Positions 1-57,799 of a stretch of DNA of 64,000 bases are shown piece after piece (position 1 is the stretch's first letter; each line of letters opens with the position of its first letter). Source of the DNA: Octopus sinensis (Eukaryota). Made by a program: the position numbers and the translations under genes. The stretch lies in assembly GCF_006345805.1 (NCBI RefSeq), contig NC_043001.1, positions 115,630,001 through 115,694,000 on the forward strand. The letters run 5' to 3'. The notes under the pieces were generated by a model that was given only the letters and a program-made list of their open reading frames with translations, was not told the DNA's origin and did not search any database.

Positions 1-1099
1 TTCTATTCACTTATCTTTATAGACCCAAGTTCCTTCAGCATTTGTCCATATTTGGATTTCCAGATTTGGCTTCATGAATAATATAAATGATGAAAGAGCT
101 GAATCTAAAATCTAGTTGCAAAAAGGGAAGGTCCAAGCTGTTCATGTAAACATTGTTGGGTGGAGTTCTTCTTGTGCCCTTTCAATAGTGTTCTTCCTGA
201 GTCCTTTCAGTTTCAGACTTATCCTTCAAATAATGTTCTACATGCATCATCGAAGGATTTGAAGAATCATTTTGTTCTCATCATATCCAATTCTGAACAG
301 GCAATATTGGCATGATCACTTTCATTATCATCTTCAGGAAAAGAAGATTCATCACAAATAATTTTTTCCCATTCTTTATGGAAGCTGGATAACAATTGTG
401 AAATCTCTTCAAGGCTTAGCTTTTGATTCTTTGATATTTCGTGGAAGGATTACAAAGGACAAATGAATAGTTGGCAGGCTGTCAATGTTTTATACTTGTT
501 GAATTATGATGCAATACTAATTGTTTGTTTCATAAAAATGATGCACTAAATAGTAGTATTGCATCATCTTCAGATGTCTTAGTAAATGCTGTTAGAGATC
601 TTTGCCCCAGTATGGGATGAGGTTGTGCAAACTGATCTCAAAATGCTGAGCCTTACAGAAGAGATGACAATGGATTGGGAGGGTTGGTGCCCTGCCATGC
701 TCAAGAAGACCTGCCCATAGCAAGCAGAACACCTACCCAAAACCTGGTCACAGTATCTCAACGTGCTGTGTGCACTGAGGATACAACTTTTTTGTAACCC
801 CGTAGTCCTGTATCATATTCTGTCGAGTTTTTGCTAGAAGACTATGAAAATCAATGTTTTTTTTTTCTATTTGCTCAAAAAAGTTCACTCATGACTAACT
901 TTGAAATTTTTATATTTGGTTGCATTTGGGTGGGTTTCCAAAAACTAGAACCCTGATAGAATAATAAACAATAAAGGAAAAAAAGATCCATAACTGTTAA
1001 AAGAATTATATTCTACATTCCAGACCAATAAAAAGAAGGTAAGTCATATAAAGTCAAATTAGTCAATAGTCAAGTTGCGGCAAGTCTAATAGAGAGAAT

Positions 1100-2420
1100 G
1101 AAACTCAATGGCAGGTTAGCTTTGTTCTTGCATGTGGTGTGTAGTTCTTGCATGACTTTAATTGCTCACTCATAGCATTAATTGCTTCTGCTGATCTTTA
1201 ATTTTGAGGGCTCTTGTTTCCAGTGATTTGTCAAGCATATCAAAGAAGTCTTGTAGAGTAGTAAGGTTTGTGATAGCTCTGCATAATCTTCAGCTCTATA
1301 CACTTGGTCACTGAACCAGTGGTCTGCCCAGTCATATGAGATGACTAGCAGACCATCTGCAATCTCTCACATGTGACGTAAGTAAAAATATAAGAAGGGC
1401 TAGGATTGTTTGCAAATTCCATCTGGCATTACTGATGTTTGGAATTTTCTGAAACTTGATGAAAGGGATGTCTCTCTTTCCATGGAAGAACTTGAAGGCA
1501 TGGGTTAAGTGAAACAGAAACTTCATATCTCTCTCAACCAGCTTGATCTACTATGACGATTTCCATTCTGGAAGGAGCCTTGGAGTTCTTCATACCTTGT
1601 CATGAGTTCTTTGACAAGAAAATATCCGATGTTGAGTGAATTGCTTGCACTAGCTAGCTCCTCATCCATAAAATATGCAGGATTCTGTCCAAGACATGGT
1701 GTTTGTTGCTCATGAATTGTGGCTCATCATAGCATTTGTTCAAGAAATTCTCTGCAGTCTAACCACTACCCAACTCTTTCATCCGGTATTCACACTCGTC
1801 GTATCAGCAATAATCATTTAGTGAAATTCATCCAAGATGCTTTTCAATCCTTCTGCAATGCTTCTCGACCTTGTCACCACACAGCTTCAGAGCAGCCAGC
1901 TTAATTTCACTTGTTTTGTCTTGATGAATTACCACTTGATATTCATTTCCGTCAATATGTTTACCATCAAAATGCAGGTCCCATTTCTGATTGCCTAGTG
2001 TATTGATCAAGTGTTTCTTCATTACACCAGCTTTCTCAAACAGTGCATTGTAAAATGCCTTGCTGACTAGGAGCTGGGATATCAATGTCCTCCTCTGACA
2101 ATTCTTTGCAGATTTTCGCAGCTTTGTAGGTAGAGACATTTGTCATCAAATATGTCATCTTCACCATAATTATACTCTTCAATCTGTTCTTCTTCAGAGT
2201 CACTGTCAGTTCCAGGGTTGCTGAGTTTGATAAAGAATGGGAGGCTTCAGCATCCGAGCATCTTCTCTTGGAATTATGGATAGTGTGCTTGCTTGCAGCT
2301 TTACTTGTTGAATAACCCATTTTGCCCTGGCTTTGGAGTTGGATAGAGTAAAGCATTTTATCATCAGCATTGAGCCATTCATTGCAGACTTTGTTGATAT
2401 TGAACAGTTCTTCTAATGGC
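1100..2420 (-). mobile_element. Decayed hAT-like DDE transposase (left arm)
   Basis: Fragments WDLHFDGK, IIADTTSVNTG, KHRVLDRIL and PNISNARWN, with stops and frameshifts. Superfamily recognised from motifs, not from a search. Confidence 0.6.
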
Positions 2421-3009
2421 TCAAATTGTCTTTTTTAGGTGCATTTGTCATACAAATGAAGCACATTTTTGAGCCGGGAAATGATTGGAAAATTCAGCTT
2501 ATCTCTTCACAGTAGTGTCACCTCTTTCAATAATTCTGTCACTCTCTTCTTTCTGCCTTTAATTGATTTCCAAAAAAACTGGTCCCGACCAGCAACCTTC
2601 TCCTTGAGTGGCATTTGAATTCTGCTGTTCAGTGAGGCTTCATCTACAGACACATGACCTCTAGATGAATGGGACTGGAACAGCACCAGATGCAGTGTTT
2701 ATGTAGGCAAATAAATACAAAAGCGCCTGGAAGCATCCCTGATCTGGTCACTGATATATGTGGACTATGTTATAAAGAACAATGATTGCAGTGATTTCGG
2801 GTTCACCAGAACTCACATAACATCCAAGTGTTACTTGGATCATAGAATGATTCACAGCAAGGTATTTTTTAATCCATATGGAAAGAGGCCACTAAAATCC
2901 AGTTTACATCCGAGAATAAACATTGCTTCTTTAAAAAAATCTATAAATGATAAAAAAATTTGAAATACATTTAAATTCAAAGCTTGCAGAAATAGAGGAA
3001 TGCCTAAAA

Positions 3010-55039: not shown

Positions 55040-56350
55040 TTAGAGGAACTGTTCAATATCAACAAAGTCTGCAATGAATGGCTCAATGCTGATGATAAAA
55101 TGCTTTACTCTATCCAACTCCAAAGCCAGGGCAAAATGGGTTATTCAACAAGTAAAGCTGCAAGCAAGCACACTATCCATAATTCCAAGAGAAGATGCTC
55201 GGATGCTGAAGCCTCCCATTCTTTATCAAACTCAGCAACCCTGGAACTGACAGTGACTCTGAAGAAGAACAGATTGAAGAGTATAATTATGGTGAAGATG
55301 ACATATTTGATGACAAATGTCTCTACCTACAAAGCTGCGAAAATCTGCAAAGAATTGTCAGAGGAGGACATTGATATCCCAGCTCCTAGTCAGCAAGGCA
55401 TTTTACAATGCACTGTTTGAGAAAGCTGGTGTAATGAAGAAACACTTGATCAATACAATAGGCAATCAGAAATGGGACCTGCATTTTGATGGTAAACATA
55501 TTGACGGAAATGAATATCAAGTGGTAATTCATCAAGACAAAACAAGTGAAATTAAGCTGGCTGCTCTGAAGCTGTGTGGTGACAAGGTCGAAAGCATTGC
55601 AGAAGGATTGAAAAGCATCTTGGATGAATTTCACTAATGATTATTGCTGATACGACGAGTGTGAATACCGGATGAAAGAGTTGGGTAGTGGTTAGACTGC
55701 AGAGAATTTCTTGAACAAATGCTATGATGAGCCACAATTCATGAGCAACAAACACCGTGTCTTGGACAGAATCCTGCATATTTTTATGGATGAGGAGCTA
55801 GCTAGTGCAAGCAATTCACTCAACATCGGATATTTTCTTGTCAAAGAACTCATGACAAGGTATGAAGAACTCCAAGGCTCCTTCCAGAATGGAAATCGTC
55901 ATAGTAGATCAAGCTGGTTGGAGAGATATGAAGTTTCTGTTTCACTTAACCCATGCCTTCAAGTTCTTCCATGGAAAGAGAGACATCCCTTTCATCAAGT
56001 TTCAGAAAATTCCAAACATCAGTAATGCCAGATGGAATTTGCAAACAATCCTAGCCCTTCTTATATTTTTACTTACGTCACGTGTGAGAGATTGCAGATG
56101 GTCTGCTAGATCATCTCATATGACTGGGCAGACCACTGGTTCAGTGACCAAGTGTATAGAGCTGAAGATTATGCAGAGCTATCACAAACCTTACTACTCT
56201 ACAAGACTTCTTTGATATGCTTGACAAATCACTGGAAACAAGAGCTCTCAAAACTAAAGATCAGCAGAAGCAATTAATGCTGTGAGTGAGCAATTAAGGT
56301 CATGCAAGAACTACACACCACATGCAAGAACAAAGCTAACCTGCCATTGA
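55040..56350 (+). mobile_element. Decayed hAT-like DDE transposase (right-arm mirror)
   Basis: ORFs 55100-55420, 55317-55637 and 55711-56025. Lacks the 1 bp insertion (gtcgAgaagc) that frameshifts the left copy. Confidence 0.6.
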
Positions 56351-57799
56351 GGTTCATTCTCTCTATTAGACTTGCCGCAACTTGACTATTGACTAATTTG
56401 ACTTTATATGACTTACCTTCTCTTTATTGGTCTGGAATGTAGAATATAATTCTTTTAACAGTTATGGATCTTTTTTTCCTTTATTGTTTATTATTCTATC
56501 AGGGTTCTAGTTTTGGGAAACCCACCCAAATGCAACCAAGTATAAAAATTTCAAAGTTAGTCATGAGTGAACTTTTTTGAGCAAATAGAAAAAAAAAACA
56601 TTGATTTTCATAGTCTTCTAGCAAAAACTCGACAGAATATGATACAGGACTACGGGGTTACAAAAAAGTTGTATCCTCAGTGCACACAGCACGTTGAGAT
56701 ACTGTGACCAGGTTTTGGGTAGGTATTCTGCTTGCTATGGGCAGGTCTTCTTGAGCATGGCAGGGCACCAACCCTCCCAATCCATTGTCATCTCTTCTGT
56801 AAGGCTCAGCATTTTGAGATCAGTTTGCACAACCTCATCCCATACTGGTGGCAAAGATCTCTAACAGCATTTACTAAGACATCTGAAGATGATGCAATAC
56901 TACTATTTAGTGCATCATTTTTATGAAACAAACAATTAGTATTGCATCATAATTCAACAAGTATAAAACATTGACAGCCTGCCAACTATTCATTTGTCCT
57001 TTGTAATCCTTCCACGAAATATCAAAGAATCAAAAGCTAAGCCTTGAAGAGATTTCACAATTGTTATCCAGCTTCCATAAAGAATGGGAAAAAATTATTT
57101 GTGATGAATCTTCTTTTCCTGAAGATGATAATGAAAGTGATCATGCCAATATTGCCTGTTCAGAATTGGATATGATGAGAACAAAATGATTCTTCAAATC
57201 CTTCGATGATGCATGTAGAACATTATTTGAAGGATAAGTCTGAAACTGAAAGGACTCAGGAAGAACACTATTGAAAGGGCACAAGAAGAACTCCACCCAA
57301 CAATGTTTACATGAACAGCTTGGACCTTCCCTTTTTGCAACTAGATTTTAGGATTCAGCTCTTTCATCATTTATATTATTCATGAAGCCAAATCTGGAAA
57401 TCCAAATATGGACAAATGCTGAAGGAACTTGGGTCTATAAAGATAAGTGAATAGAAATAAACTCTGCTGAATTTAGAAAGTCTATTGGATTGATTATTCT
57501 TATTGTAGTTTCCAAATCCAAGCATGAAAACATTACTCAAACTTAGAGTTTTAGAGACAGACACCCCCATTGCAAACACACACACACACACACACACACA
57601 CACACACACACATGAATGCATTAATGTACATATAAACTTATATATGAATACATACATCCACATGCACATATATATTGGTGATGTACACAAATACATAACA
57701 GGTATACATAATACTGACATAAGCAACCCATATTGATTCCTGTGTGTAGAAATCAATGGCTTCATAAAGTACAACTGTAACAACTAATGTGAAACAAAC

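Follow-up and report, generated by a model that had tools for sequence, protein, structure and literature searches.

An inverted repeat of at least 57 kb in an Octopus sinensis assembly: spacer-containing palindrome, or fold-back junction continued along a second haplotype?

The window analyzed here, 64,000 bp of the forward strand of Octopus sinensis contig NC_043001.1 (assembly GCF_006345805.1, positions 115,630,001 to 115,694,000), is dominated by a giant inverted repeat in which two arms of about 27 kb face each other across a 4.3-kb spacer. The locus raises the question of whether both arms lie on one chromosome, as an ageing palindrome maintained through gene conversion between its arms (the proposal of an earlier, sequence-only reading of this window), or whether assembly has set two copies of one locus head to head. 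We slightly prefer an explanation that begins with a fold-back junction, either real or formed at the level of a read, after which the assembly returned along the other haplotype; its probability sits just under an even chance. Whether the 57-kb-scale structure is biologically real is close to an even call, and sequence alone cannot separate this explanation from a true palindrome.

Self-BLAST, together with MAFFT alignment of the left arm to the reverse-complemented right arm, shows that positions 1-26868 (left arm, forward strand, 26,868 bp) are the colinear reverse complement of positions 31137-57456 (right arm, reverse strand, 26,320 bp). No N occurs anywhere in the window, which has a G+C content of 34%, and the GC skew is mirrored from one arm to the other. 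These results confirm the mirrored, colinear and gap-free arms that the sequence-only reading had described. Base-by-base comparison places its arm boundaries correctly to the single base, with the last homologous bases, ...GATCCAGAGA, at 26868/31137. Its minimum size of 57 kb is also correct: the left arm is clipped by the window at its first base, position 1, making this size a lower bound, and any mirror partner of the stretch past the right arm (57457-64000) would lie upstream of the window. The arm alignment contains 24,717 aligned columns and 251 mismatches (transitions to transversions, 160:91), an identity of 98.98% that becomes about 86% once gap columns are counted. There are 52 insertion or deletion (indel) events between the arms, six of them large (189-1,257 bp). 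Outside simple repeats, the whole arms carry 204 single-nucleotide differences (SNPs) in 23,726 columns, equivalent to 0.86% divergence or 99.14% identity.

SNP density along the arms is uneven (variance/mean 4.7), and a two-rate changepoint in the clean SNP rate falls at left-arm position 22,440. The inner zone (22466-26868, forward strand; partner 31137-35541) is nearly identical between the arms. With a cluster of zinc-finger (ZNF) differences excluded, it holds a single SNP in 3,933 clean columns against 38 expected (P(<=1)=1e-15), a clean divergence of 0.025%; with that cluster included, the inner 4.4 kb is 99.6% identical. The outer zone (1-22465, forward strand; partner 35542-57456), 22.4 kb long, has a clean SNP divergence of 0.97%, with local values between 0.3% and about 4%, and contains all six large indels. 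SNP density in this zone declines steadily with growing distance to those indels: it is 1.55% up to 500 bp away and 0.66% at more than 2 kb. One repeat segment of the outer zone, 5645-6236 / 51388-51996, with a third copy at 60750-61352, shows about 4% arm divergence, four to five times the average, and its changes are evenly divided between the arms.

Two zones of such different divergence bear directly on the simplest accounts of the structure, in which both arms come from one fold-back molecule or form an inverted segmental duplication of a single age that has drifted without exchange. The near-identical inner 4.4 kb speaks for them. One molecule cannot yield 0.97% divergence, two retroelements present in one arm only and four further blocks of 189-1,000 bp, and a duplicate of a single age cannot yield a 4-kb stretch at 0.025% next to arms that otherwise differ by 1-4%. 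We regard both accounts as refuted by this comparison of the arms. The sequence-only reading had argued for a real, ageing palindrome over a fold-back chimera, and its case against the chimera stands for the outer arms, where a one-molecule fold-back is excluded by the 0.97% divergence, the retroelement insertions and the deletions.

The large indels indicate what kinds of event separate the arms. Two of the six arose by retroelement insertion, in each case into the right arm: a 242-bp short interspersed nuclear element (SINE; 43918-44159, reverse strand) with a pure 20-nt poly-T/A tail, and the 1,257-bp 3' part of a long interspersed nuclear element (LINE; 41090-42346, reverse strand), which is 5'-truncated and keeps an open frame of 276 amino acids (aa). 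The SINE has a tRNA-like head with A and B boxes that was read by eye and is not called by ARAGORN or Rfam; related pieces lie at 29357-29448 and 21285-21323. The LINE is read as a probable 5'-truncated element from the relatives of its 276-aa open reading frame (ORF), which are associated with reverse-transcriptase (RT) and RT zinc-binding domains. The named relatives come from O. bimaculoides, where the match adjoins an RT domain (PF00078), and from Argonauta hians and Octopus sinensis, and by themselves make an octopod the probable host; zf-RVT (PF13966) is present in distant matches.

The remaining four large indels are blocks found only in the left arm, all given on the forward strand. 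The 517-bp block at 7850-8366 has AAT microhomology (right-arm site 49777/49778), a SINE-like element is cut in the right arm where the block is missing, and the event is probably a right-arm deletion. A deletion in the right arm is also the probable origin of the 334-bp block at 17374-17707, which is flanked by the 9-bp direct repeat CAATTTCAA (right-arm site 39298/39299). A 58-aa ORF spans the right edge of this block; Pfam gives no support to a reverse-transcriptase label considered for ORFs of the right tail and of the 17.4-18.2 kb region, and the label was withdrawn. A composite block of 1,000 bp at 21207-22206 (right-arm site 35801/35802) lacks a target-site duplication and ends about 230 bp outside the changepoint, and a 189-bp block at 5427-5615 lies between two (TA)n runs. 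The arm-specific transposon insertions invoked by the sequence-only reading therefore account for two of the six large indels, in the right arm only, and at least two of the others look like microhomology deletions. Every large change that can be polarized (the SINE, the LINE and the two microhomology deletions), together with a stop codon in the ZNF ORF, is derived in the right arm.

Only 9 of the 52 indels are of homopolymer type, and the differences between the arms are therefore biological rather than consensus noise. Where a third repeat copy provides an outgroup, SNP polarity is symmetric between the arms, at 13:12. Poorer consensus in one arm was considered as a source of the differences and ruled out by this symmetry and by the scarcity of homopolymer-type indels. 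Taken together, the indel types, the young SINE, the open-frame LINE and the symmetric SNP polarity make the outer differences look like natural polymorphism.

The sole novel junction of the structure lies at 31136/31137, where the end of the spacer meets the middle of an inverted mariner copy. Base-by-base comparison shows that it is blunt, with 0 bp of microhomology and no inserted bases, and that the two ends of the spacer share no inverted repeat (last bases ...ATGATCAA, first bases CCAAAGCC...). The other boundary, 26868/26869, is no physical junction, because a complete mariner runs across it from the left arm into the spacer. This element (26198-27489, forward strand, 1,292 bp) has 33-bp inverted terminal repeats (ITRs) matching at 31 of 33 positions and a TA on both sides. 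Its length of about 1.3 kb, its ITRs, the TA target duplication and a transposase with helix-turn-helix and DDE domains are those of Tc1/mariner elements. The transposase matches Pfam Transposase_1 (PF01359, E=7e-24), with PF17906 present in relatives, and a homology search and tblastn place its closest 350-aa relatives at about 87-88% identity; relatives of the element occur in crustaceans and octopus, a spread that says little about the host, as mariners move horizontally.

The partial mariner copy that opens the right arm (31137-31807, reverse strand) comprises the first 670 bp of the element, from the 5' ITR to residue 168 of 350. A single frameshift at about residue 64 is present in both copies (26553-26556 and 31449-31452), and the element had therefore lost activity before the two copies separated. 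The junction creates a chimeric C-terminus, ...YHYDPE/IDHVRS, that is found in no database protein, and the junction-spanning ORF has no identical or near-identical match among 5.8 billion proteins. No protein encoded in the window appeared among the matches of three homology searches, made with the junction ORF, the mariner and the LINE ORF.

Between these boundaries lies the single-copy spacer (26869-31136, 4,268 bp). Its first part (26869-28883, 2,015 bp) consists of the 3' half of the mariner and a segment, X, and includes 1.4 kb of microsatellite-rich sequence. It is followed by a hairpin, H (28884-29124), and by a second flank, Y (29125-31136, 2,012 bp), which contains SINE-like pieces and a second hairpin. 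Apart from simple sequence repeats (SSRs) and SINE pieces, X, H and Y have no further copies in the window.

The position of the arm boundary within a multi-copy transposon would suit a repeat-mediated false join on the left side. In this scheme the genome would contain, in order, the full mariner, X, H, Y, the truncated inverted mariner and the adjoining arm A', with A present once, and the assembly would have passed from the full mariner, through the shared 670 bp, into the sequence flanking the truncated copy on the other haplotype. No chimeric junction would be needed, and the contact between Y and the mariner would be an old truncation. Set against this, a 670-bp repeat is much shorter than long reads, and the near-identity of the adjoining 3.7 kb of non-mariner sequence is left unaccounted for, which makes a left-side false join very unlikely. 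Locality excludes a random ligation chimera, since the two points that were joined lie on opposite strands at a distance of 4.3 kb.

A fold-back junction followed by the other haplotype, the explanation that we slightly prefer, would take the observations as follows. At 31136/31137, the single-copy stretch of 4.27 kb would end and be joined, in mid-mariner, to the DNA immediately upstream of that stretch, copied in inverted orientation. Only the inner 4.4 kb would be the same DNA represented twice, either as a very young, real, short inverted duplication or as the two passes of a fold-back or chimeric long read. Past the inner zone, the assembler would head back and follow the second haplotype of what is one single-copy locus, so that the outer 22 kb and more would be two alleles placed head to head and the giant palindrome would not exist on one chromosome. 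The junction, the two divergence zones and the kinds of differences are plain in the sequence; the allelic status of the outer arms and the turn taken by the assembler are what we infer.

This explanation requires a near-identical inner zone, because it contains a shared inner segment, and it leads to octopod-level divergence in the outer zone, because the outer arms are alleles. The outer divergence of 0.86-1.02% compares with heterozygosities of 0.95-1.22% in four of five octopods (Amphioctopus fangsiao 0.96%, Hapalochlaena maculosa 0.95%, O. sinensis 1.10% and O. vulgaris 1.22%) and 0.08% in the fifth. The local range of 0.3-4% and the rise in SNPs near indels would be expected if coalescence time varies along two alleles. 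Several octopod assemblies have been built from Oxford Nanopore (ONT) reads, and fold-back reads make up about 0.6% of ONT genomic libraries (Heinz, Meyerson and Li 2026, PMC12870357). Such artefact reads resemble the present structure in that one locus is read on both strands in turn and in having a near-identical inner segment. Among duplication errors in assemblies, those caused by retained haplotypes predominate (Ko et al. 2022, PMC9516828). Such false heterotype duplications are adjacent copies that differ at the level of heterozygosity and carry structural variants; the outer arms here carry structural variants too, and their divergence is close to the heterozygosity of four octopods. 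Two mis-joined haplotypes, which the sequence-only reading had kept as an alternative, are at least as likely as the palindrome that it favored; the combination of a fold-back with a second haplotype was not among its options. Its picture of an ageing palindrome undergoing gene conversion is not established, given arms that are unevenly aged, with an inner 4.4 kb that is essentially identical and an outer 22 kb at the level of octopod heterozygosity.

Several points weigh against the preferred explanation. Most false heterotype duplications adjoin gaps (PMC9516828), whereas no N gap separates the copies here, and the inverted orientation and the unique 4.3-kb spacer are further differences from that class of error. 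Described fold-back reads turn within about 200 bp or less, not across an offset of 4,268 bp, and they are virtually absent from HiFi data (PMC12870357). A 4.4-kb inverted repeat should be resolved by reads with an N50 of about 20 kb, and the assembler error needed is uncommon. The ZNF array, with 14 SNPs inside the supposedly shared zone, needs a separate cause. Real fold-back duplications typically have spacers of about this size, 4.27 kb. Lastly, heterozygosity in O. bimaculoides is 0.08%, and in such an octopod an allelic origin of the outer arms would fail.

A genuine single-chromosome palindrome is nearly as likely as the preferred explanation, with a probability somewhat below even. It would have arms of at least 27 kb, a 4.27-kb spacer and patchy arm-to-arm conversion, with the latest tract, of at least 4.4 kb, lying by the spacer. 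Its origin would be an old fold-back inverted duplication, or a fold-back followed by inner deletion of one arm, after which substitutions, two retroelements and several deletions accumulated. The contiguous sequence without a gap and the one clean junction agree with this, and the mirrored mariner frameshift and older mariner remnants show that the two copies share a common ancestry. The nearest precedents for such an origin are the human fold-back duplications of Hermetz et al. (2014, PMC3907307), which likewise have one disomy-inversion junction and, between a non-inverted and an inverted copy, a single-copy spacer a few kilobases long. The spacer here, 4,268 bp and unique within the window, falls within their single-copy spacer range of about 0.7-70 kb (766-70,466 bp, median 3,428 bp). 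The junction differs from theirs. Sequenced human junctions show 2-8 bp of microhomology, repeats or insertions, whereas no inverted microhomology, insertion or shared repeat is present here; 0 bp of microhomology was also obtained in 55% of simulated random junctions in that study (PMC3907307). A terminal deletion, telomere or translocation distal to the inverted copy also belongs to that class; at this locus its place would be beyond the reach of the window.

Inverted junctions close to their source are also produced by origin-dependent inverted-repeat amplification (ODIRA) or hairpin-capped amplification (Martin et al. 2024, PMC10766183). In that system, spacings above 1 kb can arise from secondary deletion of one inner arm, a route that would be available to a genuine palindrome here. 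ODIRA junctions form at pre-existing interrupted inverted repeats of 2-14 bp, 40-80 bp apart (up to 250 bp), and none is found at the junction here, which would fit ODIRA only through a secondary deletion. The strong hairpin H lies mid-spacer, away from the junction.

Comparison with the palindromes of mammalian sex chromosomes (P1-P8 on the human Y and 26 on the human X) leads to a similarly mixed result. In these, too, inverted arms of more than 8 kb enclose a spacer that is not duplicated, and their spacers range from 77 bp to 358 kb, an interval that includes 4,268 bp. Structural change is concentrated at the center in both, and palindrome centers are hot spots of change. A multi-kilobase identical tract, as seen in the inner zone, is compatible with arm-to-arm conversion without being specific for it; documented conversion tracts average 2 kb and exceed 9 kb. 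Uneven divergence that peaks beside large heterologies would fit conversion blocked by indels. The overall identity is borderline against the >99% that defines such palindromes: the arms, at 98.98% over aligned columns (about 99.0%; 99.14% outside simple repeats) and with six large indels, are far under the 99.9% or more of actively converting ones. There is only one long identical tract and it happens to adjoin the junction, and no conversion gradient toward the spacer was found for real palindromes in the literature examined. The arms contain no intact gene that selection could preserve, unlike those of the sex chromosomes. Finally, an outer divergence equal to octopod heterozygosity would have to be a coincidence.

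The position of hairpin H within the spacer is a separate puzzle. H has arms of about 115 bp, 90-91% identical by BLAST, around a 12-nt loop, and folds as DNA with a free energy of -114 kcal/mol (z = -24.5). Its axis, at 29004.0, is 1.5 bp from the spacer midpoint at 29002.5, and the flanking halves, 2,015 and 2,012 bp long, differ by 3 bp in length. The two halves are dissimilar when compared directly, as reverse complement, as reverse and as complement, with global alignments set against shuffles and unrelated window sequence. The spacer was considered as a degraded or rearranged part of the palindrome, an idea rejected because its halves are unrelated in every orientation. The spacer contains two strong hairpins that are not microsatellites, and with this taken into account such centering would arise by chance with a post-hoc probability of about 0.001-0.004.

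The central position of H may nevertheless be a coincidence. None of the models tried can account for it. If the fold-back had occurred at H, the spacer should read X-H-X' as a mirror image, which is not seen. Precision of 3 bp over 2 kb is beyond models of physical juxtaposition (a plectoneme apex, replication forks at equal distances, or zippering of single strands), and no workable route leads from a polishing artefact to the observed centering. H occurs as a single copy within the window, the range searched, and may still be a dispersed miniature inverted-repeat transposable element or foldback element. A more specific version of the palindrome, in which homogenization proceeds from the center outward on a single chromosome and the two breakpoints of the structure, at least 57 kb long, are set symmetrically to the base pair around a 240-bp cruciform-forming hairpin, is improbable in our estimation. 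If it were true, it would represent a hairpin-nucleated route to spacer palindromes that fold-back, ODIRA and non-homologous end joining models do not predict.

In the second spacer hairpin (30110-30548, 440 bp), a (CT)n(TA)n(GA)n core is enclosed by arms of about 200 bp that are 97% identical in the part outside SSRs. The two highest-identity hairpins of the window thus both lie inside the 4.3-kb spacer. The spacer also contains several pure (TA)30-43 runs, which are themselves perfect palindromes, and SINE-like, tRNA-derived-looking pieces at 29205-29460 and 29560-29690 that are kin to the right-arm SINE and are not called by ARAGORN or Rfam.

Which explanation holds determines what the locus can be used for. 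The kind of structure, a spacer-containing inverted duplication or palindrome, is already known, and no report of large palindromes in cephalopods was found in the literature searched. A true palindrome would, as far as that literature shows, be the first described in a cephalopod, and would add this group to those in which large palindromes with a spacer and exchange between the arms occur. Its 204 clean paralogous variants and six structural markers would allow conversion tracts to be traced, and its founding junction would be datable because it lies inside a transposon. If the structure is instead an assembly fold-back, about 27 kb or more, and probably much more upstream, has been falsely doubled with no gap to flag it, and the two-zone divergence signature could be used to screen heterozygous genomes for such errors from sequence alone. 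With no intact gene in the region, the direct consequences for the biology are probably small either way.

The rest of the arms consists largely of repeats and ORF fragments. No intact host gene is evident in them, the remaining ORFs are unrecognized by Pfam, and Rfam and tRNA scans returned zero matches. The arms include a three-finger C2H2 ORF, a fragment at 23692-23988 (forward strand), whose partner at about 34019-34315 contains a stop codon. It has an 84-bp period in Tandem Repeats Finder (TRF) and matches Pfam zf-H2C2_2 (E=6e-25). The 14 SNPs of its array fall within 264 bp (23694-23957 / about 34050-34313), in an otherwise identical inner zone. Several of these changes equal the sequence of neighboring 84-bp units, which suggests intra-array conversion or conversion from a paralogue. 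Both arms also contain degenerate transposase remnants of older mariner type, with 27-37% identity to a 350-aa transposase, at 18511-19488 and 25211-25603 and, mirrored, at 37519-38497 and 32405-32797.

The window carries a very heavy microsatellite load. Arrays of (TA)n type reach 900 bp, and (ATAG)n/(ATAC)n repeats flank the boundary mariner; microsatellite sites include 15030-15937, 40727-41067, 42542-42849, 26000-26189, 27490-27571 and 29869-29954. In the right tail, two segments of about 290 bp (59716-60010 and 61396-61736), 1.4 kb apart and 89% similar, each form a hairpin, and the pair looks like a foldback-type or terminal inverted repeat element.

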